Shown here one piece after another: positions 3,663 to 33,939 of a stretch of DNA of 64,000 nucleotides. Source of the stretch: Hyalangium minutum (lineage in GTDB: Bacteria > Myxococcota > Myxococcia > Myxococcales > Myxococcaceae); contig NZ_JMCB01000031.1 of assembly GCF_000737315.1 (NCBI RefSeq), positions 20,808 to 84,807 of the forward strand. Direction: 5' to 3'. The number at the start of each line of letters is the position of its first letter. The first letter of the stretch is position 1. The notes below the pieces were generated by a model. The model worked only from the letters and a program-made list of their open reading frames with translations, ran no database searches and had not been told where the DNA came from. The position numbers and the translations under genes were made by a program.

Positions 3663-4670
3663 TCAGTGGAACCGCAGCTCGCCCGCCACCCGCAGCGAAC
3701 CCATGACTTCGCCGCGCGTGTTGCGCAGCACCGGCTCCTCGTGGTGCGTCAGCCCTTCTAGCGGCAACGTCAGCCCCGTCTCTGCACCGCGCTTCGCGGC
3801 CACCTGCCGCAGCACCGCCAGCAGCGCGGGCGGCGAGCACCGCCCGTCCCCATCCTCCACCTTGAGTGCCACGCCCAGCCCCAGCGCAGGGAGGGCCGCG
3901 CAGTAGACGCCCTCGGCCCCCACCTTCGCCAGCACCGTGCCCCGGCACGCCGCCATCAGCTCCGTGCACAGCCGCCCCGTGCCCGCCACCAGCTCCGGGT
4001 GAGCCCACATCGCCTCGCGCACCCGCCGCGCACCCGCCTCCTCCGAAGTGCCCAGCCGCGCGTAGGCCGTGGCCATGGCGCTCAGCGGCAGGGCGAAGCA
4101 CACCGCCGTGCACCCATCCACGCCCAGGTGCAGCCCCTCGGGCCCCAGCCCTGTCCACCGGCGCACCTCCGCGAGCAGGCGCTCCTGCACCGGGTGGCCC
4201 AAGCGCTCGTAGCCCTGCGTGGGCCAGCCGTGGTGCCTCGCCAGCGCGAGCATCCCCGAGTGCTTCCCCGAGCAGTTGCTCCACTTGGGCGTCAGCTTCA
4301 CTCCCGTGCGCGCTGCCTCCTCGGCCACCGCCGCGCTGAGCGGTGGGTGCGGCCCACATGCCAGCTGAGACTCCTCGCAGCCGCAGGCGCGCAGCATGGC
4401 CTCGGCCAGCTCGCGGTGGACGGGCTCGCTCGAGTGCGAGGCGCACGCCAGCGCCAGCTCCCGCGTCCCAAAGCCCCAGCGGTCCGCCGCCCCATCCATC
4501 ACCAGCGGCAGCGCCTGGAAGGGCTTCGCCGACGAGCGCCAGTACGTCATCCGCTCGGAGTCCCCCGCCGAAGCCACGGCCCGGCCAGACACGTCGGTGA
4601 CAACCACCGAGACCCGGTGGACGGATTCGGCGATGCCAGAGCGGGTGGACTCGATGGAGAGCGAGGACAT
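3663..4670 (-). CDS. L-asparaginase II (Rhizobium etli AnsA-type, class 3)
   Basis: RSSAKPFQA, CASHSSE, NCSGKH, DGC and AKVGAEG motifs. Confidence 0.88.
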   Translation of the reverse strand: MSSLSIESTRSGIAESVHRVSVVVTDVSGRAVASAGDSERMTYWRSSAKPFQALPLVMDGAADRWGFGTRELALACASHSSEPVHRELAEAMLRACGCEESQLACGPHPPLSAAVAEEAARTGVKLTPKWSNCSGKHSGMLALARHHGWPTQGYERLGHPVQERLLAEVRRWTGLGPEGLHLGVDGCTAVCFALPLSAMATAYARLGTSEEAGARRVREAMWAHPELVAGTGRLCTELMAACRGTVLAKVGAEGVYCAALPALGLGVALKVEDGDGRCSPPALLAVLRQVAAKRGAETGLTLPLEGLTHHEEPVLRNTRGEVMGSLRVAGELRFH

Positions 4671-22206: not shown

Positions 22207-23592
22207 TCAAGCACTCCCTGGGGAGGAGGCCTCGGCCGCGAGCGCCGCCAGCTCATCCTGGAAGGCCACCACCAACCGGTGGGGATCCGGCACCAGCCCC
22301 GCGTCCACGGAGACGCCCACCGTCACCTGGCCCGCGTAGCTGAAGATGCTCACGCCCAGGCTCACCTTGCCTGTCTGGGGCACCCAGAACATCAGCCCCT
22401 CCAGCTTCGTGCCCGCCAGATACACCGGGTGCCGGGGGCCAGGGACGTTGGTCATGACGAGGGAGCCCTTCGACGCCACCACCTCCACCACCGCTTTCTC
22501 CAGCGCCGCCGGGGCCATCCCCGCCATGCCGAGCATGCCGAACGTCAACGCCGCCTCCGGCGAGCGCTTCAGCGCGTCCATGCGCTGCTTGAGCAGCCGG
22601 AGCCTCCGCCGAGGCTCCACCTCCTTCACCGGCAGATCCAGGAACACCAGCCCGAAGCGATTGCCCAGCTCGCGGGGAATGGGCGCATCCAGCGGCCGCA
22701 GGTTCACCGGGACGAAGGCGCGCAAGTCCGCCACCGGCCCTCCCCGCTCCTCCAGGTAGCGCCGCAGCCCGCCCGAGAGCGCCGCGAGCAGCACGTCATT
22801 GACGGTGCTCTCCATGGCGCGGCCGGTGGCCTTCACCTGCTCCAGCGGCAGCGGATCCGACCACACGGCACGCTTCGCCTGGCCCAGCGCTCCCCGAAGC
22901 ACCGTGGGCGGATCCGAGGGCAGCAGCGCCAGCCGCTTCAGCGTGGCCGCGCCCCGGGCCCCCTCGCGCACGAGGTCCCCCACCTGGATGGGCTCGGCAA
23001 TGAGCTCCGCGCTCCGCTTGAGCGCGGCACGGGTGCCCGAGGCCACCGCGCGGGCCCCTCGCAGCAGCTTCATCCAGCTGGGCGCGGGCGGCGCCTCGCG
23101 GGCGGAAGGCTCGGGGGTGAAGTGCTGCTCCGTGCCCTCATCCATGAGCGACAGGAGCACCCGCGCCAGGGAGATGCCATCCGCGAGCGTGTGGTGGATG
23201 CGCACCAGGAGCGCGCCCCCCTTCCCGAAGCCCTCCACGAGGTGCGCTTGCCAGAGTGGGCGCGAGCGCTCCAGCGGCACGCTCATCCACTCGCTCACCA
23301 GCGCCTCCAGCGCCTCGCGGTCTCCCGGCGGCGGCACCTGGAGGTGGCTCACGTGGGCGTCCCAGCGGAACGCCGCGTCTTCCTCCCAGAAGGGAACCCC
23401 GAGCAGGCCCTCGGGAACCACCAGCCGCTGACGGAAGCGGGGGAAGCGGTCCACCAGCCGCTCGCGCAGCACGGCCTCGAGCCGCTCCCAGTCCGGGCGC
23501 TCCTCGAACCAGAGCACCGCGGTGATCATCATCAGGTTGGTGGGCTCCTCCATCCGGAGCCACGCCGCATCCACACTGGCCAGCCGTTCCAT
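22207..23592 (-). CDS. Wax ester/triacylglycerol synthase O-acyltransferase (WS/DGAT)
   Basis: DAAWLRME, RPLWQ, HHTLADG catalytic motif, TVNDV, TNVPGP. Confidence 0.93.
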   Translation of the reverse strand: MERLASVDAAWLRMEEPTNLMMITAVLWFEERPDWERLEAVLRERLVDRFPRFRQRLVVPEGLLGVPFWEEDAAFRWDAHVSHLQVPPPGDREALEALVSEWMSVPLERSRPLWQAHLVEGFGKGGALLVRIHHTLADGISLARVLLSLMDEGTEQHFTPEPSAREAPPAPSWMKLLRGARAVASGTRAALKRSAELIAEPIQVGDLVREGARGAATLKRLALLPSDPPTVLRGALGQAKRAVWSDPLPLEQVKATGRAMESTVNDVLLAALSGGLRRYLEERGGPVADLRAFVPVNLRPLDAPIPRELGNRFGLVFLDLPVKEVEPRRRLRLLKQRMDALKRSPEAALTFGMLGMAGMAPAALEKAVVEVVASKGSLVMTNVPGPRHPVYLAGTKLEGLMFWVPQTGKVSLGVSIFSYAGQVTVGVSVDAGLVPDPHRLVVAFQDELAALAAEASSPGSA

Positions 23593-23671
23593 CGTCACGC
23601 CCCGTCGTACTTCAACGTGGCAGCCACCGTCTCCCGGGAACGAGAGCCCCCTCCGCGGGTCTGCGGACGCC

Positions 23672-24472
23672 CTACGGCTTCTCGGCCTCCTGGGTGTCAC
23701 GGGCCTGGGTGCGCTGGAACTGGAAGGTGCTCTTCGAGGCGTCATCCACCACGAGGGTGAGCATGTCCTGCTCGACGCTGAAGGAGTAGCGCGGGCCCAG
23801 GAACTTCCCCTTGGACAGGCCGATGACGCGATCCACCCCACACACCTTGCCCACGGCCTGCCCGTCCTTCGGCTTGAGCACCACCTTGTCCTTCGCCACA
23901 GCGAAGGAGCCCCACGAGCGCACCTCGAGGAAGTTCCCCTGGCCGACCGCGGAGTCCTCCAGCTTGGTGCGCAGGATGAAGCACCCGGAGGGCGTCACCT
24001 CCAATGTCCGCACGTAGTCGGGACGAGGGTCAGGGTTGAGCCGGGCCGGCGCGCCAGGAGGCTCGGGCTTGAGGGTCGCCGCGACGAGCTCCCAGCGCCC
24101 CACCACCTTCTTGGGAGGCGGACCGTCCGTGGAAAAGCCCTCGCACGGCTCCCGCTTCTCCTTCTCCGGGCTCTTGGGAGCAGGCTCGAAGGCGCGCTGA
24201 CACGTGCCTCCGCACAGGCGCGCCGAGCACTCGCTGTCATCCTCCGCACAGCCGGCCTTCTCGGTGCACGCCCGGAGCCGGCCGAGCGCCTGCTCACAGC
24301 CTTCGCGCAGGCATTGGTCCATGCAGCTCGAGTCAATGCACTCGGAGACACACACCCAGTTGGTGGTTCCACACACACCGCCTCCGAGGGTACGCGGAGA
24401 ACGGCTGGAGGCCTGGGCGCCAGCGGAAGCCACCCAGCCCAGCATCACAAGGACACAGAGCGTACGAGACAC
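23672..24472 (-). CDS. Secreted protein with a Cys-rich N-domain and a lipocalin-like C-domain
   Basis: Signal peptide; about 10 Cys within 60 aa; VVGRWELV...WGSFAV...RYSFSV..LTL pattern. Confidence 0.7.
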   Translation of the reverse strand: MSRTLCVLVMLGWVASAGAQASSRSPRTLGGGVCGTTNWVCVSECIDSSCMDQCLREGCEQALGRLRACTEKAGCAEDDSECSARLCGGTCQRAFEPAPKSPEKEKREPCEGFSTDGPPPKKVVGRWELVAATLKPEPPGAPARLNPDPRPDYVRTLEVTPSGCFILRTKLEDSAVGQGNFLEVRSWGSFAVAKDKVVLKPKDGQAVGKVCGVDRVIGLSKGKFLGPRYSFSVEQDMLTLVVDDASKSTFQFQRTQARDTQEAEKP

Positions 24473-24491: not shown

Positions 24492-25490
24492 TCAGGCGAA
24501 GTGCCAGCGCCAGGAGGTGACCTCCTCCAGCTCAGGCATCTCCAGCTCGAAGTGAAGCACCTGGCTGCGGGTGAAGACGCGGGAGTCGACGCGGAGCAGC
24601 AACATCGGTGTGGGGTTCTGCGGCCGCTGGGGCGAGGCAGCGAAGGAGGTGTCCTCATCGAAGGCTGCCCGGTAGAAGACACAGAAGCCATCCAGCCGCC
24701 CCTCGTGCTGAATGGGACGGGTGACGTGGAAGTGGCGAGTCAGGTCTCCGGGCCGCACGGTCTCCAAGTCGAAGACGAGCACGGGTGCGGGCTCGCACAG
24801 CAGGTGGGACACCTCGTAGGAGTGGATGAGCCGGGTGAAGTACGAGGGGCTCATGGCCTCGCGCAGGGTCTGAAGGCAACTGAAGTCCACGCTGGGCAGG
24901 CGCTGGCTCCAGATGAAGGGGAGGCAGGCCTCGTCGCGGAGCTGGACGGGCTCGATGAACAGCTCGAAGCGGTGGGGGAGGATTCGCCCACCGGGCCGGA
25001 GGAGCCGGGTCCGCAGCTCCACCAACTGGGACACCAGTCCCCGGTCGAACAGGGCGGGCCCCATCTGCTCGTGGAGCAGGACGTCCACCTTCTTGTCCGG
25101 AGGCATGAAGCGCTGGGGGTGCTCGCGCACGAAATCGATCTGCTCGGAGAGCCCGTGGCGGCGAGCCACCCAGCGGGCGGTGTCCAGGTGGCGCGAGGGG
25201 TCCACGGCATAGAGCTTCCGGGGCGAGCGGTGGGCGGCGAGGAGCGTCCGCAGGCCGGCACCGGTGCTCACATCCATGACGACCTGGCCGGGGCGCACGT
25301 AGCGGCCAATGGCCTGGCGGTAGGCCTCCACGCGCTCGGGGTCCGCGAGGGTGGGATCATGCGGAGCGGGACTCGACAACGTGAGGCTGTCGGGCAACAC
25401 ATGCCGCAGCGTGTTGACGAGGGGATGGTGTCGCAGCCGTGACTGCAGATCGAACAAGGCCTGCCGAGGCAGGTCGAAAAGGTTCAGCAT
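24492..25490 (-). CDS. Protein arginine methyltransferase (PRMT)-like SAM-binding protein, degenerate motifs
   Basis: RVEAYRQAI, VMDVSTGAG, KVDVLLHEQMG, LLRPGGRILP, LDGFCVFY beta-barrel. Confidence 0.8.
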   Translation of the reverse strand: MLNLFDLPRQALFDLQSRLRHHPLVNTLRHVLPDSLTLSSPAPHDPTLADPERVEAYRQAIGRYVRPGQVVMDVSTGAGLRTLLAAHRSPRKLYAVDPSRHLDTARWVARRHGLSEQIDFVREHPQRFMPPDKKVDVLLHEQMGPALFDRGLVSQLVELRTRLLRPGGRILPHRFELFIEPVQLRDEACLPFIWSQRLPSVDFSCLQTLREAMSPSYFTRLIHSYEVSHLLCEPAPVLVFDLETVRPGDLTRHFHVTRPIQHEGRLDGFCVFYRAAFDEDTSFAASPQRPQNPTPMLLLRVDSRVFTRSQVLHFELEMPELEEVTSWRWHFA

Positions 25491-26082: not shown

Positions 26083-27150
26083 TTACCCCGTCACCGGCAC
26101 GCGCACGAGCCGGAAGCCCACATTCGGTGAGCTCCCGCGCGTGTCAGCCGAGCGAAAGCTCACGCGCAGCACTTCCGCACAGTCCGCCCAGGAGCCGCCT
26201 CGCAGCACGTGCCCCCGATCGGGAATCTCTTCCCCCAGGACACAGAGCGGCGACTCCTCGGGACTGTCGAAGTAGAAGGACGCGTCGTAGTGGTCGGCGC
26301 ACCACTCCCACACACCGCCCGCCATCGAATAAAGGAAGTAATCGTTCGGCGGAAACACGCGCGAGGGGCGCAAGAAGAACGCGCCGAAGTGACCAAAGTC
26401 CGCGCGCATGACATCGGGTGGCGCGTCCCCCCAAGGGTACGAGGCACCCCGGAAACAGCCTCGGGCCGCGCGCTCCCACTCTGCCTCGGTCGGCAGCCGG
26501 TACTGCACCGCAGCCGTGCTCATGTGGCGTCCCACGAGCTCGGCCAGCTCCCAGCCCACTGCGACCATGGGCTTCTGATCGAAGCGAGCCGGCGAGTTGC
26601 TCGTGCGCTCCGGCGCCCCGAAGAGCTCCTGAGAAGTCATCACTTGGCCATCGCGCGTCCAGAGCCCCTCTGTGTCGTGGGCATGCCAATCCCTGGCGCG
26701 CACTGTTTCGTTCTCGCAGTACTGCAGCCGGATCTTCGAGTCGTTGCTGTACTCGAACCGGGCGCGACTGGGAGCAAACGCCTCGGAGATGAGCGCGAAC
26801 TGCGCATCCGTGGGGCGCCCATACGGGTCCGGCCAGCCGAGCACCCGCGCGAAGTCGTCCCAAGACAGGGGCGCCTCGCTCATCCAAAACCCGGGGAGCG
26901 TCACCCGGTGCGCGGGGCGCTCGTCGGGCTCCCCATTGGCATTCCCCATCACGAACGAGCCCGCCGGGATGTAGCGGAACACCAGCCCGTGCTCCTTCAC
27001 CGCGAGCCGGTCCAGGTCCTGCTGCAGGAGCGGCACCACGCGCTCTCGGTCCTTCCAGGCCACCGCATCCAGGGTCGCGGCCGCGCCCATGAAGTCTCCC
27101 CGAGAGCGCTGCTCCTCCGCTCGAGCGAGGGCTTCATCGATCACCGACAT
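26083..27150 (-). CDS. FGE-sulfatase (SUMF1) fold protein
   Basis: IPAGSFVMG, ERPAHRV, RLPTEAEWERAARG, YPWG, GGVWEWC, RGGSW, NVGFR. Confidence 0.9.
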   Translation of the reverse strand: MSVIDEALARAEEQRSRGDFMGAAATLDAVAWKDRERVVPLLQQDLDRLAVKEHGLVFRYIPAGSFVMGNANGEPDERPAHRVTLPGFWMSEAPLSWDDFARVLGWPDPYGRPTDAQFALISEAFAPSRARFEYSNDSKIRLQYCENETVRARDWHAHDTEGLWTRDGQVMTSQELFGAPERTSNSPARFDQKPMVAVGWELAELVGRHMSTAAVQYRLPTEAEWERAARGCFRGASYPWGDAPPDVMRADFGHFGAFFLRPSRVFPPNDYFLYSMAGGVWEWCADHYDASFYFDSPEESPLCVLGEEIPDRGHVLRGGSWADCAEVLRVSFRSADTRGSSPNVGFRLVRVPVTG

Positions 27151-28439
27151 GAACCCTCCCTCGGTGCATCGAGGACAGGCAGGCGCCAGCGCTCGGGGCG
27201 CTGCTCCCCACGGGACTGAGCCTGCCAAGGATCCTCCGCGTAGGCCGAGCCCGCGTAGAACTGCGCGCGCGCCCGGCAGCCTCCGGTGAAGCGGTCATCC
27301 TCGGCACCACCTCGCATGCGCCGGAAGGCGTGGCCCTCGCGCCAGATCTCCTCGAAGGGCCGCTGCCGAATGTTCCCGGACTCGAAGGCCTTGCCCAGGA
27401 AACTGCACGGGTTCACGTCTCCCTGCACCGAGATCGACGCCACCGTGTTCGCGGCGCCGCATCCCGCGCCATGGTTCACCACGCCCCGCAGCTCCTCCCG
27501 CGCCGAGGGGCTGAAGGGGTCCAGGGCAAAGAGATCATTGTCGGCCTCGACCCGCTCCAAGCGGGCGAGTGCATCCACGTAGCCCTCGAAGGAGGGCATC
27601 AGCTCCGGCGTGCGTGCCGCGATCCCCACCGGATACAGCGGCCGGAACACGGCGGTGTGCGCGCCTACCCGCTGGGCGAGCGCGACACAGTCCTCCACTT
27701 CCGCGAGGTTGTTCTGGGTGAGCGTGAAGGCCAGCGTGAAGCGCGCGTGGCGGCCCAGCAGCTCGAGCTTGTCGAGCACCCGGTCGAACACGCCCTGGCC
27801 TCGGACGGCATCGTTCGACTCGGCGCGAGCGCCTTCGAGCGAGACGTTCAGCCACACCAGCTCGCGCCGCCCGAGCTCCCTCGCCATGCGCTCCGTGAGG
27901 AGGAGGGCGTTGGTCGTGAGGCAGGGGTGGAGCCCATGGCCCGTGGCCGAGTCGAGCACGTCCAGCAAGTCCCTGCGCATCAGGGGCTCGCCGCCCGTGA
28001 GCCCTAGCCGGAAGCTGCCAAGTCCCGCGAGCTGCGAGAAGAGTCCATCCATCTCCTGGAGCGTCAGCGGGTGGTGGTTGCGCGGCAGCTCCCCGGCGAA
28101 GCAGTGCGTGCAGGTGAGGTTGCACGCCCCGACGACTTCCAGGTGCACGGCGAGCGGGCCCAGCAAGTGGTCCGGAGGTGGCTCCCGATCGATGCGCGCA
28201 GCCGCCAGGCGCCCGTCCATGCGGAGGTAGCCCCGGGAGGCGAGGTCCACGGTCAACCCCTCGACAGCCTCCCGGTCTTCCGGGGCCGCGGCCTCGATGA
28301 CGTCCCCCGCCGGACGCTCGGTCATGTCTCGGAGCACGGCCGCCGCGGGCTTGTCGAAGGGCAGATACCGGGACGAGCGCCGATCGAAGAGGAGCGCCCC
28401 GAAGTGCTGCGGGATGAAGACGAGCGAGGGGCGGCTCAT
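27141..28439 (-). CDS. Radical SAM enzyme with an N-terminal RRE/MftB-like domain and a truncated SPASM (Twitch-like) domain
   Basis: CNLTCTHC, TGGEP, TTNA, SLEG; CGAA...GDVNPC...GGCRAR; N-terminal PQHFGALLFDRRS. Confidence 0.9.
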   Translation of the reverse strand: MSRPSLVFIPQHFGALLFDRRSSRYLPFDKPAAAVLRDMTERPAGDVIEAAAPEDREAVEGLTVDLASRGYLRMDGRLAAARIDREPPPDHLLGPLAVHLEVVGACNLTCTHCFAGELPRNHHPLTLQEMDGLFSQLAGLGSFRLGLTGGEPLMRRDLLDVLDSATGHGLHPCLTTNALLLTERMARELGRRELVWLNVSLEGARAESNDAVRGQGVFDRVLDKLELLGRHARFTLAFTLTQNNLAEVEDCVALAQRVGAHTAVFRPLYPVGIAARTPELMPSFEGYVDALARLERVEADNDLFALDPFSPSAREELRGVVNHGAGCGAANTVASISVQGDVNPCSFLGKAFESGNIRQRPFEEIWREGHAFRRMRGGAEDDRFTGGCRARAQFYAGSAYAEDPWQAQSRGEQRPERWRLPVLDAPREGSCR

Positions 28440-29032
28440 GAGAACCCCTCCATGTCCACGCGGAAGCGCCAGCGCACCCACGCTCGCGCCGCCTTGACGG
28501 GCAGCCCCAGCCCCTTCGCGTCGCGCTGCAGGTGCTGCCACCTCCAGCGCTCGTTGCCATGGGGATCGGGAACCGGCTTCTCCACGAGGGGCACGAAGTC
28601 CGGGCTGTCGAACGTGGGGAGCTGCCACCCCTCGGGCGGCTCGCGCGTCGCCGCATGCCACTGGCCATCCGCCTGGGACCTGGCCTGCCCCCGCCGTGCC
28701 GTGGAGATGGCAGGCCGAAGGTATGCCGTCACGAGGAGAAAGCCCGCGTCCCCAGGGTTGTCCACGATGAACGAGAGCACATGCTCCCCGGGCTCCACCG
28801 TCATGCGCTGCTCGTCGAGGCGCTTCCCATCCAGGAAAGGCCCCTGGGAGGTTCCCGCCACGTACGAGGACACCGAGATGCCGATGGGAGCCCCCGGGCG
28901 CCGCCAGCGGAGGACCACGCCACCGCACCCGGCGGGCACCTCGCAGTGGCTGTGCACCTCGAGCGCGAGCCGGTTCGACATCTTCCGGTAGCGCTGGAGC
29001 TCGTTGAGACGCAGATCGTCACGGTCAGCCAT
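28436..29032 (-). CDS. Hypothetical protein with an HSHCEVPAGCGG motif
   Basis: 198 aa from ATG at 29032; its stop overlaps the rSAM start (ATGA). Confidence 0.75.
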   Translation of the reverse strand: MADRDDLRLNELQRYRKMSNRLALEVHSHCEVPAGCGGVVLRWRRPGAPIGISVSSYVAGTSQGPFLDGKRLDEQRMTVEPGEHVLSFIVDNPGDAGFLLVTAYLRPAISTARRGQARSQADGQWHAATREPPEGWQLPTFDSPDFVPLVEKPVPDPHGNERWRWQHLQRDAKGLGLPVKAARAWVRWRFRVDMEGFS

Positions 29033-29119: not shown

Positions 29120-29503
29120 CTACTTCTTATGCTCGATGGAGACGGCCTTGTTCTCCATCTTCTCGATGCCGAAGGAGGCACGCACCTCGGCACCCGGCTG
29201 GAACTCCTTCTTCAGGTGGGACTCGATGCGCTGGTCCTTTTTCAGCTCCTTGCCATCCACCATCGTCTGATGGCTCACCCGGAGCGGGATGATGGCTCCC
29301 TGCTCAGACTCGACCAGAAGATCGTCCGACTTCACCCCCACCACCCTGCCTGTCAGCTCCTTCTGACCCTGCTGCATCTGACCCTGCTGCATCTGGCCCT
29401 GCTGCGTCTGGCCGTGCATCTGGCCCTGCTGCGTCTTGTCCGCCGCGAACGCAGCCCCGCCCAGCATCAGCGCCGTCACAACCCCCAAAGCCTTCCAGTT
29501 CAT
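29120..29503 (-). CDS. Small secreted protein with QQGQ repeats
   Basis: Signal peptide ending AAFA; TQQGQMHGQTQQGQMQQGQMQQGQ followed by a small beta-domain. Confidence 0.8.
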   Translation of the reverse strand: MNWKALGVVTALMLGGAAFAADKTQQGQMHGQTQQGQMQQGQMQQGQKELTGRVVGVKSDDLLVESEQGAIIPLRVSHQTMVDGKELKKDQRIESHLKKEFQPGAEVRASFGIEKMENKAVSIEHKK

Positions 29504-29706: not shown

Positions 29707-32700
29707 TCACCCCACCGGAGCGCTGCCGGGACGGAGCCGGGCCGCGAAGGCCTGGAGCCGCTCCCGGGCCCGCTCTAGCTTGTCGCGAGGAATCGAGAAC
29801 ACCACGCGCACCCGCTCTGGATCCCCGCACCACGGGCCGCCGTTGAGCACCACGTGCGTGTGCGCGTACACCACGCGCGGGAGGTTCTCCACCGTGAGCC
29901 GCTCGCCGTCCACCTCTCTCCCCAGCCACGCGCTCACCTTGGGCGCGAGGAAGAGTCCTCCCGCCTCCGTCGTGTCCGAGCGCCCGTTCCCCGGCAGGGC
30001 CCCGGCAATCAGCGCCCGCTTCTCCGCCAGGTCCCGCCGCATCTTCACGAGGAACTCCTTCAGGGCCCGCTGGCGCGACGGGTACAGCAGCCTTCCTTCC
30101 GGGCTGCGCGCATACGCGGCATAGAGCCAGGCAGCCGCACGTGCCGTGGCCAAGGCCGGCGGCACCAGCCCGCTCTCGTTCAGGGCCGCCATGAGCCCCG
30201 CATCCCGCGTCGCCAGCCAGCCCAGGCGCAGGCCTCCCGCGGCGAACTCCTTGGAGAGCCCTCCCAGCACCACCGTGCGCGCTCCCACCCCGGGCACCAC
30301 CTGCTCCAGCGTCACCGGGCTGTGCACCGTCTCCGCCGTCGGGTTCGTCAGGTTCACCAGCCCGAAGATTTCGTCCGACACCAGCAGCGCGCGCTGCTCC
30401 ACCACCCACGTCGCCAGCGCCACCAGCTCCTCGTTCGAGAGGTAGGAGCCTTCCGGATTCGAGGGCTGAGAGATGACCGCCACATCCGGCCCTCCCGGCC
30501 CGCGCCGCTCCTGGAGCGCCGCCACCGGCCCCAGCTCCACCTCGCACCCGGCCGCCACCCACGTGGGCGGCAGCACCCCGTAGCAGGGCGTGGCGATGAA
30601 GACGCGCGGCGCCCGTCCCAGCCGCTGGCGCAGCGCCACCCCCAGGTGATGCATCAGCGGCCACACCCCCTGGCCCAGCGCGATGTGCTCCGGCGCGTAC
30701 CGCGTCGCGCGCGTCTCCCGCAGGAAGCCCACCACCGCCTCGGCCAGCCCATGCTGCGTACCCGCTTCGTGCGGCGCCAGGAGCGAGGCCACCACTCCCT
30801 CGATGAGCGGCTGGGGCATGGCTCCCTCGTTCTCGCCATAGTCCAGCCGGATCAGCTCTGGGTCTCCCTCCTGGAACACCTTGGGCGCGAACGCCGGGAA
30901 GCCCGCCAGCCGCTTGATGCGCTCCGAGCGCGGCAACGGCACCGCCGGGGCTCGAACCGCCGCGGGCCGCTCCGGCTCGGCGAACGAGATGCGGAACGCC
31001 AGCAGCTCCTCGAAGGTGCGCTCATAGAACCCCTGCGCCAGCGTGCCGATGCGCGAGTACGTCACCTCCGCCGCCACCTCGAGGTCTCCTCGCAGCGGCT
31101 CCGGCACCGGCAGCAGCAGCGTCAGCTCCAGGTCCGGCCACACCGCGTTCTTGATGAGCCCGTAGAGCACCACCAGGTTGGGAGGCAGTGGCTCGCGGGC
31201 CAGGAACTCGAAGAGCGTGAGCGGCTCCACCTCACTGGTGATGTGGAAGAAGGCGCTCTCGTCCAGCACGACCCAGATGCCCCGCCGCGCCGCCTCCGCG
31301 ACAATCTCCCGGAGCACCGCCAGGTTGGTGCGCTCGCCCCGCTCCACCGAGAGGAACACCACCTTCACGTCGAACGCCCCCAGCAACCGGCGGATCTCCG
31401 AGAGCGTGCTGTGTGTCACCGTCGTGCGCACCCGCGCCCGCTCCAGCGCCCGCGCGTACACCGGCAGCAACTGGCGCGACACCAGCACCCCATCGCCAGG
31501 GTCACACAGCGCCAGCAGCAGCGAGTAGACGGTCTGCTCGCGCTCGGGCGCGACGAAGAGCTCCTCCTCCCGCAGGCGCAAGTCGAAGAACCGCTCCAGG
31601 TAGCGGGCCACGAGCTGACGGAAGGGAGCATCCCCCGCCTCGTGCGTGTACGGCATCACCGGCGAGCGCGTGAGCCGCTCCGCCAGCGCTGCCACGAAGC
31701 CCAGCTGCTCCTGGGACACGGCCCCCAGGTCCAGCTCCTCCGCCAGCTTCGAGGCTCCCAGCGTCCGCAGCGCCGCGCGCAAGGCCAGCGTTTCCCGAGG
31801 CAGCGCCAACCTCGCCTCCCACACGGCCACCTCGTGCCAGATGGGGTGGCCCACCTGCAACCAGCCCAGGGCCGTGGCGGCTCGCAGGGGCTCGGCGCTG
31901 TGCGCCTCCATGAAGAACTCGAACTCGCGCTCTGTGCGCTGCTCCAGTGCCACCAGCGGCCGGATGTCCGTGTCCGCCGCCTGCATCACCCGCCGCGCCA
32001 CCCGCACCTGGGTGGCGAAGCCCCGCCGGGTGAACATGCGCTCGATGATGGGCCGCCCCGGCCGCCCCGCCAGGTTCAGCAGCAGCCGCCCGCTGGGCGC
32101 CAGGTACTCGGGCACCTCATCCAGGAGCTTCGCGATGAGCCCCAGCCCGAAGTGGTCCTCGTAGACGTTCTGCAGCACGGTGTAGTTGGACAAGTCATAC
32201 AGCTCCTGCGTGTCCGCCTCCGCCGGCGCCTCGGGCAGCCCCTCCGTGCGCAGCACCTGGGGGATGCAGCCCACCACGAAATCCCACGCCGCGCCCTCGG
32301 GCAGGCCGCGCAGCAGGTTGCTCTCTCCGAAGGACATCCGCGCCACCATCCGCGCGTCCCCGTTGAGCCACGCGTTGCAGGTGGCCACCCAGGGCGAGTG
32401 CGGGTTCAGGTCCGCGCCGTGGATGTGGGCCAGCCGCGTGAACTTCGCCAGCGCGATGCAGATCCACCCCGAGCCCGTCCCCACCTCCACCAGCCGCTTC
32501 CCGTCGTACTCGTCCAGCGGCACCTTCAACATGCCCTCGAGGAAGGTGTACGCCCAGTCCTCCGGGGCGAAGATGGACGGCAGCAACAACAGCTCCAGCC
32601 GCTCCTGCCTGGAGCCTACCGCCGCCATGACGGTGACGAGCCGCAGCGGAGCGCCCTCGGGTTGGCCTCGGCTCAGCTCGGCCAGTGCGCGCAGCTCGGC

Positions 32701-32796
32701 CAGCGCCGACGCACGCCGCTCTGGAACGGCCAGGGCCTCCGCAAGCTCACGGAGTTGGTGCACCGCGTCGCGAGCCGACTCGGGGTAGGTCGCCAT
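29707..32796 (-). CDS. Full-length plant-type methionine S-methyltransferase (methyltransferase plus PLP aminotransferase-like domains)
   Basis: LPSIFAPEDWAYTFLEG, EVGTGSGWICIALA, VGCIPQVL, EDHFGLGLIA, LLLNLAGRPG; C-terminal ISQPSNP, VSDEIF, LSKEF. Confidence 0.88.
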   Translation of the reverse strand: MATYPESARDAVHQLRELAEALAVPERRASALAELRALAELSRGQPEGAPLRLVTVMAAVGSRQERLELLLLPSIFAPEDWAYTFLEGMLKVPLDEYDGKRLVEVGTGSGWICIALAKFTRLAHIHGADLNPHSPWVATCNAWLNGDARMVARMSFGESNLLRGLPEGAAWDFVVGCIPQVLRTEGLPEAPAEADTQELYDLSNYTVLQNVYEDHFGLGLIAKLLDEVPEYLAPSGRLLLNLAGRPGRPIIERMFTRRGFATQVRVARRVMQAADTDIRPLVALEQRTEREFEFFMEAHSAEPLRAATALGWLQVGHPIWHEVAVWEARLALPRETLALRAALRTLGASKLAEELDLGAVSQEQLGFVAALAERLTRSPVMPYTHEAGDAPFRQLVARYLERFFDLRLREEELFVAPEREQTVYSLLLALCDPGDGVLVSRQLLPVYARALERARVRTTVTHSTLSEIRRLLGAFDVKVVFLSVERGERTNLAVLREIVAEAARRGIWVVLDESAFFHITSEVEPLTLFEFLAREPLPPNLVVLYGLIKNAVWPDLELTLLLPVPEPLRGDLEVAAEVTYSRIGTLAQGFYERTFEELLAFRISFAEPERPAAVRAPAVPLPRSERIKRLAGFPAFAPKVFQEGDPELIRLDYGENEGAMPQPLIEGVVASLLAPHEAGTQHGLAEAVVGFLRETRATRYAPEHIALGQGVWPLMHHLGVALRQRLGRAPRVFIATPCYGVLPPTWVAAGCEVELGPVAALQERRGPGGPDVAVISQPSNPEGSYLSNEELVALATWVVEQRALLVSDEIFGLVNLTNPTAETVHSPVTLEQVVPGVGARTVVLGGLSKEFAAGGLRLGWLATRDAGLMAALNESGLVPPALATARAAAWLYAAYARSPEGRLLYPSRQRALKEFLVKMRRDLAEKRALIAGALPGNGRSDTTEAGGLFLAPKVSAWLGREVDGERLTVENLPRVVYAHTHVVLNGGPWCGDPERVRVVFSIPRDKLERARERLQAFAARLRPGSAPVG

Positions 32797-32951
32797 ATGG
32801 GGCAAAAAATGTGTCACGCCCGCGAGGAGCGCACCACGTTCACGGCGTCCTCCGTCCAGCGCCGTACATCCCCGCGCCCGGCGGCACGAAGGTCACGGAG
32901 TCCTTGCCCGCTTCCGGGCAATCGTGGCAGGTGGAGTGCAGGAGGAGAACC

Positions 32952-33450: not shown

Positions 33451-33939
33451 GTGGAAATCACCAAAGACACTGTTGTTACCGTCGACTACCGCCTGCACCT
33501 CGGAGACGGGAAGTACATCGAGGAGAGCGAGAAGGATGATCCGCTCGTCTACCTGCACGGCTACGAGGAGATCGTCCCCGGCCTCGAGAAGGCGCTCGAG
33601 GGCAAGAAGGCTGGCGACACCCTGAAGGCCACGGTCTCTCCGGAGGATGGCTACGGCGAGTATGACCCGGACGCCGTGGAAGAAGTGCCGCGCGAGGAGT
33701 TCCCCGCGGACCTGGAGCTGGAGGCGGGCGGCATCGTCACCGCCACGGACGACGAGGGGGATGAGGTGGAGTTCACCGTCAAGGAGCTGCGCCCCAAGAC
33801 GGTGGTGGTGGACTTCAACCACTCGCTCGCGGGCAAGACGCTCCACTTCGAGGTGACCGTGCGCGAGGTCCGCAAGGCCACCGAGGAGGAGCTCGAGCAC
33901 GGCCACGTGCACAGCCCCGGCCACGACCACGACCACTGA
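33451..33939 (+). CDS. slyD: FKBP-type peptidyl-prolyl isomerase SlyD
   Basis: YLHG...PGLEKALEG, PEDGYG, DFNHSLAGKTLHFEV, His-rich tail. Confidence 0.93.
   Translation: MEITKDTVVTVDYRLHLGDGKYIEESEKDDPLVYLHGYEEIVPGLEKALEGKKAGDTLKATVSPEDGYGEYDPDAVEEVPREEFPADLELEAGGIVTATDDEGDEVEFTVKELRPKTVVVDFNHSLAGKTLHFEVTVREVRKATEEELEHGHVHSPGHDHDH

Follow-up and report, generated by a model that had tools for sequence, protein, structure and literature searches.

A conserved three-gene cassette encoding a radical SAM enzyme with a predicted RRE domain, a candidate protein substrate and an FGE-like protein in Hyalangium minutum

Radical S-adenosylmethionine (SAM) enzymes that bear a RiPP recognition element (RRE; a RiPP is a peptide made by the ribosome and modified after its translation) are as a rule mined for the small secreted peptides that they produce. 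MftC with MftB, and PqqE with PqqD, are RRE-dependent and build a cofactor from a ribosomal peptide. QhpD modifies a protein, QhpC, which stays a functional subunit (the gamma subunit of quinohaemoprotein amine dehydrogenase), and its chemistry joins a cysteine to an acidic residue. The anaerobic sulfatase-maturating enzymes (anSME) have no RRE and two fully ligated auxiliary clusters. Here we describe a cassette of three genes from Hyalangium minutum, located at positions 26083-29032 on the minus strand of a 64,000-nucleotide stretch of contig NZ_JMCB01000031.1, hereafter called the window, whose G+C content is about 70%. The genes encode a protein termed ORF1 (from open reading frame, ORF), a radical SAM enzyme, and a protein with the fold of the formylglycine-generating enzyme (FGE).

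ORF1, the radical SAM enzyme and the FGE-like protein constitute a conserved unit across phyla, and the cassette is present in at least seven bacterial phyla. With slightly better than even confidence, we interpret it as a self-contained three-gene protein-maturation system, not a peptide natural-product cluster, in which the radical SAM enzyme would modify a short core segment of ORF1 and the product would stay on ORF1. No curated family covers ORF1 or names the other two proteins, and we read the locus as an RRE-dependent radical SAM maturation system that is unusual in its probable substrate, a protein, and that includes a partner of the FGE fold. Full-text literature searches, directed at FGE in combination with radical SAM enzymes, at DUF323, at the motif itself and at the genes MXAN_3455 to MXAN_3459, returned nothing on the cassette, in agreement with the first-pass annotation of this DNA, which could match it to no described pathway.

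Gene layout and conservation of the cassette

The three genes of the cassette are arranged as follows.

28436-29032, minus strand: ORF1; ATG start at 29032-29030, TGA stop at 28438-28436, 198 amino acids.
27141-28439, minus strand: radical SAM gene; ATG start at 28439-28437, TGA stop at 27143-27141, 432 amino acids, with PF04055 and PF13186.
26083-27150, minus strand: FGE-like gene; ATG start at 27150-27148, TAA stop at 26085-26083, 355 amino acids, with PF03781.

The sequence ATGA at 28439-28436 is common to the radical SAM start and the ORF1 stop, and the FGE-like gene overlaps the radical SAM gene by 10 nucleotides at 27150-27141. These overlaps agree with the first-pass annotation, and both peptides that it had quoted are found in the translations (HSHCEVPAGCGG, ORF1 residues 27-38; PQHFGALLFDRRSSRYLPF, residues 10-28 of the radical SAM protein). 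Its observation that no short precursor ORF is adjacent was likewise correct, as no plausible one was found in the 88 nucleotides separating ORF1 from the upstream gene. Pfam assigns Radical_SAM (PF04055, 2.6e-18) and SPASM (PF13186, 1.4e-08) to the second protein and FGE-sulfatase (PF03781, 5.9e-41) to the third; the NCBIfam cut-offs are reached by none of the three. These are real genes and not chance ORFs of GC-rich DNA, because each has hundreds of homologues. A scan for promoters and terminators gave nothing exceeding the shuffled background.

The scan for the ORF1 motif covered 185,579 species genomes and returned 101 relatives, from which 80 loci were kept. Among these 80 loci, a set selected by the ORF1 motif, tblastn detects an adjacent radical SAM gene 76 times and the FGE gene 71 times. 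The four loci with no radical SAM gene comprise two contig ends, one frameshifted ORF1 (L079) and one intact solitary ORF1 (L027). The FGE gene alone is missing in five further loci; two of them are contig ends, and the remaining three (L031, L038 and L082) truly have no FGE gene within 6 kb. The reverse test was a metagenome scan with radical SAM-specific patterns, independent of the ORF1 motif, and ORF1 was found directly upstream of the radical SAM gene in 56 of the 59 loci having at least 700 nucleotides of upstream sequence. Conservation of the trio, a point on which the first-pass annotation could have failed, is thus borne out both from the ORF1 side and from the radical SAM side.

The order of the genes and their surroundings are variable. 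The permuted order ORF1-FGE-radical SAM occurs in L004, L016, L017, L071 and L076, with differing flanking genes, and three distant radical SAM homologues lie among the same three genes amid unrelated flanks, one of them in the permuted order. When all flanking ORFs of the 80 loci were clustered, the only recurrent families were ORF1, the radical SAM enzyme and the FGE-like protein; no fourth conserved gene (protease, transporter or exporter, reductase) was found in these flanks.

Going by the titles of their records, the loci belong to Myxococcota (33), Actinomycetota (24), Planctomycetota (12, Gemmatales), Chloroflexota (2) and Acidobacteriota (2), with single loci in each of Armatimonadota, Eisenbacteria and Vulcanimicrobiota. 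Hosts among Actinomycetota include Actinomadura, Streptomyces, Thermomonospora, Virgisporangium, Plantactinospora and Nonomuraea. The ORF1 orthologue of M. xanthus DK1622 is MXAN_3457, which together with its neighbours brings the trio into a model organism. The radical SAM enzyme has 881 homologues at E <=1e-10 and is about 60% identical across phyla; the top 120 homologues share at least 54% identity, and their alignments include the N-terminus. This breadth and this level of identity point to a physiological role, not to a strain-specific antibiotic.

Two observations concern individual genomes. In Gemmataceae assemblies a solitary ORF1 (L027) and a solitary radical SAM gene (L093) were found, so the genes can be unlinked in that lineage. 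The locus L013 (BNCN01000016.1) and the protein P0006, both labelled 'Comamonas sp. KCTC 72670 / JC664', have 79% radical SAM identity to the enzyme of the window and the same gene order; the genome carrying this label is probably mislabelled.

The radical SAM enzyme and its predicted RRE domain

The AlphaFold2 model of the enzyme (mean predicted local distance difference test score, pLDDT, 86.8) suggests an architecture in which an RRE and a radical SAM core are followed by a SPASM domain in reduced, twitch-like form.

28164-28439, minus strand: residues 1-92, RRE-like winged-helix domain, predicted from the AlphaFold2 topology, Foldseek and the SkfB profile alignment.
28101-28124, minus strand: CNLTCTHC, the CxxxCxxC radical SAM [4Fe-4S] motif with C106, C110 and C113, invariant in 54 sequences.
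27210-27476, minus strand: residues 322-410, reduced SPASM domain in which only C327, C345 and C388 are conserved.

The modelled N-terminus consists of strands at residues 6-11, 14-19 and 24-28 and helices at 30-41, 44-50 and 53-68, with pLDDT of 87-98, and this three-strand, three-helix arrangement is that of an RRE. The best Foldseek matches of the enzyme in the PDB are CteB (5why), SkfB (6efn, TM-score 0.67) and SuiB (TM-score 0.70 over 446 columns), with a sequence identity to the SkfB/CteB-type matches of only 15-18%; the alignment to the RRE-less anSME spans only about 364 columns. A family profile aligns residues 7-90 with residues 16-103 of the SkfB N-terminal domain. The RRE is predicted with high confidence, mainly from the modelled structure and also from the SkfB alignment. 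The first-pass proposal of an RRE at this end of the protein was thereby upheld by the predicted topology, by the SuiB, CteB and SkfB matches and by the profile alignment, while the specific resemblance to MftB that it had named was not reproduced, with neither an MftB nor a Pfam PqqD match. Strand 3 of the RRE pairs with leaders in known RRE complexes, and the strand-3 residues S23, R24, Y25, P27, F28 and D29 are invariant here. Covariation between the ORF1 tail and the enzyme, computed for 91 non-redundant pairs, placed 17 of the top 100 pairs in the RRE (22 expected), and the top pairs are rare-variant artefacts.

In the radical SAM core, C173 and C251 are also invariant. The SPASM domain exceeds its Pfam cut-off (PF13186, 35.3 bits; cut-off 21.5), and three of the seven SPASM cysteines are kept. 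In alignments to PqqE and CteB, the CX12GX4C part is retained, the CxxCx5Cx3C block has lost all but its last cysteine (GGC388RAR), and DPW takes the place of the final cysteine. The second-cluster ligand positions hold no cysteine, and the C-terminal domain appears to fit the one-cluster (twitch-like) form and not a full SPASM domain. Going by the structures of anSME, PqqE and CteB, we take C327, C345 and C388 to be ligands of the first auxiliary cluster. The enzyme would contain one auxiliary cluster with three cysteine ligands and possibly an open iron site, the second cluster having been lost. In CteB, an auxiliary cluster with three cysteine ligands keeps one iron open for a cysteine of the substrate.

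The best-scoring curated family of the enzyme is MftC (TIGR03962, 137.8 bits against a cut-off of 265), and its best PDB sequence match is PqqE (6c8v, 4.9e-19). The MftC/PqqE-like core described in the first-pass annotation stands as the nearest similarity, but the scores are far below the family cut-offs. The top NCBIfam scores also include AhbD (135 bits) and NirJ2 (124 bits), and strong cross-phylum conservation is typical of metabolic enzymes; both would suit a radical SAM enzyme for small molecules, such as NirJ, AhbD, PqqE or MoaA, to which ORF1 and the FGE-like protein would be unrelated or accessory neighbours. However, these scores are two- to four-fold under the family cut-offs, the enzyme has an RRE-like domain that NirJ and AhbD are not known to have, ORF1 is an almost obligatory neighbour whichever of the two genes a search starts from, and the flanks contain no conserved genes for haem d1, alternative haem or other cofactor synthesis. 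We consider such an enzyme very unlikely; in line with the first-pass annotation, the protein is not a member of the NirJ/Ahb group, scoring far below its cut-offs. Among the PADLOC defence models, only generic viperin-core matches were obtained for the radical SAM enzyme and none for ORF1 or the FGE-like protein.

ORF1, the FGE-like protein and the proposed maturation

ORF1 combines a highly conserved N-terminal tail with a divergent folded domain.

28964-29032, minus strand: residues 1-23, leader-like segment DLRLNxLxR[YF]xKxS; N10, R14, K17 and S19 are invariant or nearly so; pLDDT 42-49.
28904-28963, minus strand: residues 24-43, LEVHSHCEVPAGCGGVVLRW, the most conserved segment (86% mean pairwise identity).
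28919-28945, minus strand: residues 30-38, core CEVPAGCGG, an invariant motif.
28439-28915, minus strand: residues 40-198, beta-sandwich domain; pLDDT 84-98.

There are 241 homologues of ORF1, all about 200 amino acids long and all named 'hypothetical'; neither Pfam nor NCBIfam has a family for it. The mean pairwise identity is 86% in residues 24-43, 67% in residues 5-45 and 30% in residues 46-198, and the only strongly conserved part of the protein is the leader-like motif followed 15-20 residues on by the invariant core. CE(V/I)PAGCGG is intact in all 57 complete ORF1 N-termini retrieved through the radical SAM enzyme only. V40, R42 and W43, which come right after the core and lie in the first strand of the sandwich, are invariant as well. 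In the AlphaFold2 model of ORF1 (mean pLDDT 86.6) the tail of residues 1-38 has pLDDT of 42-61, with residues 33-35 below 50. A tail that is modelled with low confidence yet is the most conserved part of the protein is the pattern that would be expected of a segment folding only on a partner, and we propose the leader-like segment as the docking site for the RRE. A Foldseek search of the sandwich against the PDB gave no match with E below 0.07; the domain shares only a local motif, DGxWRxTxxxPxxxWxxPxFDDxxW, with the rhamnosidase 3w5m (E 9e-7).

A HMMER pass with ORF1 residues 1-45 against 1.84 billion representative proteins yielded 325 matching representatives (clusters at 50% identity). The motif is always N-terminal in these clusters, and the proteins have 57-262 amino acids, mostly about 190-240. 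A fusion of the motif to another domain was never seen among the 325 clusters, and the short proteins among the motif matches, inspected as possible stand-alone precursors, look like fragments or chimeras.

One locus has an additional ORF of this kind. In a Chloroflexota metagenome-assembled genome without the FGE gene (L038), a 38-amino-acid ORF, MPDLNLNSLSRFSKKSSTMILEVYSHCEVPAGCGGDEDE, is encoded at 3875-3994 on the plus strand, about 600 nucleotides upstream of the full-length ORF1. It consists of the leader and core only and stops just after CGG, and it could be either what is left of a duplication or a true short precursor.

A classical RiPP pathway, in which the N-terminal 38 residues are cut off the sandwich and released as a modified peptide or cofactor by proteases and exporters encoded elsewhere, would account for the end of this ORF at CGG. 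The core ends in GG, a common leader-cleavage signal, and precedents for such a product, PQQ and mycofactocin, are found among the nearest sequence families. However, a conserved protease or transporter is present in none of the 80 loci, the architecture of about 200 amino acids is fixed in the 325 clusters with short matches resembling fragments, and the invariant V40, R42 and W43 after the core form the first sandwich strand. We regard release of the peptide as highly improbable.

In the maturation that we favour, the RRE would dock the leader-like segment of ORF1 (residues ~5-23) as an additional strand, and this docking would bring the core (residues 30-38) to the active site of the radical SAM enzyme. 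A cysteine of the core would ligate the free iron of the single auxiliary cluster, which would have only three cysteine ligands. The 5'-deoxyadenosyl radical would then take a hydrogen from a neighbouring residue, and a Cys-centred intramolecular cross-link would result, perhaps most likely a thioether like those of sactipeptides, ranthipeptides or the QhpD product. The modification probably stays on the 200-amino-acid ORF1, because neither a protease nor an exporter is encoded in the cassette and the core runs directly into the first sandwich strand. The invariance of all nine core residues and the unusual conservation of the enzyme hint that the loop of mature ORF1 is a functional site (a cofactor or metal site) rather than a mere staple. 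Between the two candidate substrates named in the first-pass annotation, ORF1 is favoured and the FGE-like protein is not, the modification itself being what we infer.

If this maturation takes place, it would add a new post-translational protein modification, or a protein-derived cofactor, to bacterial biochemistry. Mining for RRE-dependent systems would tend to miss this cassette family, because such searches usually seek only short precursors.

The third gene of the cassette encodes a clear member of the FGE fold family, with 141.3 bits for PF03781 against a threshold of 23.3 over profile positions 8-255 of 255, and S. coelicolor FGE as its best PDB match (1.3e-17). The protein has an N-terminal helical extension (residues 1-54) and a family-specific insertion (residues ~103-195). 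The insertion contains the motif KIRLQYCE(D/N)xTxRAxDWHAH, in which C145 is 94% conserved and H156 and H158 about 80%; approximately 15 of 72 family members have no His motif. In alignments to 6muj and 2q17, the copper-binding pair LCHDSYC corresponds to WADCA, where a three-residue deletion removes the first cysteine, and the cysteine that remains, C324, is 76% conserved. In NCBIfam, the protein does not reach the cut-offs of GldK, SenA, EgtB and PvdO. No signal peptide could be read from its sequence, and it is presumably cytoplasmic. We regard the FGE-like protein as an accessory to the ORF1-radical SAM pair, usually linked to it, because it is missing from three otherwise intact loci. Most likely it binds the Cys-x-x-Pro segment of ORF1, or oxidises this segment further, or is a functional partner of the matured protein. 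A canonical copper-dependent FGE was rejected, the Cu(I)-binding cysteine pair being absent. On one metagenomic contig, a second FGE-sulfatase gene is located divergently upstream of the cassette (L006, 6160-7122, minus strand).

The cassette pairs homologues of two independent types of formylglycine-making enzymes, given the anSME structural match of one protein and the FGE match (1e-17) of the other, and the start of the core, Cys-Glu-Val-Pro, is loosely like the sulfatase motif C-x-P-x-R. It could be supposed on these grounds that both enzymes oxidise the C-x-x-P cysteine of ORF1 to an aldehyde that serves catalysis or cross-linking. The details of both enzymes and of the core are less favourable: the copper cysteine pair is absent from the FGE-like protein and its remaining cysteine is only 76% conserved; the radical SAM enzyme, unlike anSME in its published structures, has an RRE and only three auxiliary cysteines; and the proline is at position +3, not +2, with no arginine at +4. 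A formylglycine-type modification seems to us quite unlikely.

The same core could also serve without being modified. ORF1 might be a structural or cluster-donating subunit whose two cysteines ligate a metal or Fe-S centre shared with the radical SAM enzyme or the FGE-like protein, the complex acting on a third molecule. The invariant C-x5-C-G-G core, the unusual conservation of the radical SAM enzyme (about 60% across phyla) and the capacity of a three-cysteine auxiliary cluster to accept a fourth ligand from ORF1 are consistent with such a role. On the other hand, an RRE together with a leader-like motif 15-20 residues before the core is the standard layout of RRE-dependent maturases, and fusions of the three components were not found among the homologues. 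We assign a low probability to this role of ORF1.

Several observations weigh against the favoured maturation of ORF1. A few genomes separate the genes, with the radical SAM gene found without ORF1 in L093, L146 and L167, and ORF1 without the radical SAM gene in L027. The isolated N-terminus of the enzyme gave NCBIfam matches only below threshold, to lasso-PqqD (in 4 of 18 members, with E of 0.018 at best) and to daptide RRE (0.038), nothing in Pfam at E up to 1, including PqqD, and nothing in a PDB profile search at E up to 10. Neither candidate cysteine of the FGE-like protein, C145 or C324, is universal. The identity of about 60% among the radical SAM enzymes across phyla and the nine invariant core residues would be less usual for a simple cross-linked peptide than for a housekeeping enzyme or a cofactor site. 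Finally, whether ORF1 is modified, where, and by what chemistry are matters of inference.

In a further reading, the cassette would build a novel metal site or prosthetic group bound to a protein. First the radical SAM enzyme and then the FGE-like protein with its Cys/His insertion would convert the C-E-V-P-A-G-C-G-G loop, possibly with W43, into a Cys-derived cofactor on the cytoplasmic beta-sandwich protein. ORF1 so modified, by itself or together with the FGE-like protein, would be a new redox or catalytic protein common in large-genome soil bacteria. We hold this to be unlikely but worth keeping in view.

Other genes of the window were examined around the cassette. Immediately upstream, at 29120-29503 (minus strand), is a gene for a 127-amino-acid protein with a signal peptide and a run of QGQM repeats (QQGQMHGQTQQGQMQQGQMQQGQ); it has no family match and is not conserved beside the cassette in other genomes. 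It is preceded by a gene at 29707-32817 (minus strand) for a 1036-amino-acid fusion of an N-terminal HemK/PrmC-like methyltransferase region with two aminotransferase class I/II-like halves, which reaches no curated family cut-off and whose architecture resembles that of plant methionine S-methyltransferase. An FKBP-type, SlyD-like peptidyl-prolyl isomerase with a His-rich C-terminal tail (HGHVHSPGHDHDH) is encoded at 33451-33939 (plus strand). On the other side of the cassette, all on the minus strand, are genes for a bacterial methyltransferase with a weak match to PRMT_C, the arginine-methyltransferase oligomerisation subdomain (24492-25427, E 1.7e-4), for a secreted Cys-rich protein of 266 amino acids with no family (23672-24472), and, adjoining the latter, for a wax-ester synthase/diacylglycerol acyltransferase (WS/DGAT; 22207-23598, E 1e-41).

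Comparison with known systems

The cassette has one homologue of each of the two sulfatase-maturating enzymes, anSME and copper-dependent FGE, and its putative target motif, like theirs, starts with a cysteine and contains a proline. In contrast to these systems, whose target is the C-x-P-x-R motif of a sulfatase, it has neither a sulfatase nor C-x-P-x-R. The assignment to anSME was rejected on account of the RRE, the three auxiliary cysteines, the lack of a conserved sulfatase gene nearby and the lack of a +4 arginine in the core. NirJ and AhbD were rejected by their scores (AhbD 134.7 bits against 500, NirJ2 123.9 against 500, NirJ 85.9 against 515) and the absence of tetrapyrrole genes from the flanks.

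MftC and PqqE are the nearest relatives by sequence. Their RRE is a separate protein, MftB or PqqD, whereas in the cassette it is fused to the enzyme. Unlike the mycofactocin and PQQ systems, the cassette has no MftA or PqqA peptide and no other pathway genes, and the second-cluster ligands of the enzyme are absent. MftC was rejected because the score is under the cut-off and no MftA/B/D/E/F context is conserved in the flanks; PqqE (TIGR02109) was rejected by its score (101.5 bits against 381) and by the absence of the second-cluster ligands in the alignment to 6c8v.

QhpD and its substrate QhpC offer a likeness in the invariant C30, E31 and C36 of ORF1, which may be compared with the Cys-to-acidic-residue chemistry of QhpD. 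The differences are that the cassette has no QhpA, QhpB or QhpE genes and that ORF1 is unrelated to QhpC and cytoplasmic; QhpD is absent from the 25 best-scoring NCBIfam families of the radical SAM enzyme.

The CxxxCxxC motif within a fold that matches radical SAM structures, an auxiliary domain and a predicted RRE, which are features of an RRE-dependent radical SAM maturase of the SPASM/twitch type, are present in the cassette. It also encodes, as a candidate substrate, a protein with a leader-plus-core layout in a tail predicted to be flexible. SkfB, CteB and the PapB-type enzymes have the same domain order, with an N-terminal RRE, the radical SAM core and a C-terminal SPASM/twitch domain, and they act on a Cys-rich substrate, as is proposed for the enzyme of the cassette. 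The auxiliary cluster of CteB is reported to have fewer than four cysteine ligands, like the cluster proposed for the enzyme described here. Their substrates are peptides of 40-60 amino acids with a C-terminal core, whereas ORF1 is a folded protein of 200 amino acids with the core near its N-terminus. The cassette differs from these systems further in having no protease or exporter and in having an FGE-fold partner. Rare bufferin-cytochrome c-FGE fusions, recorded in a survey of MNIOs, oxidative enzymes that depend on multinuclear non-haem iron, are a rough precedent for finding an FGE domain next to peptides that are modified at Cys (PMC12452194).

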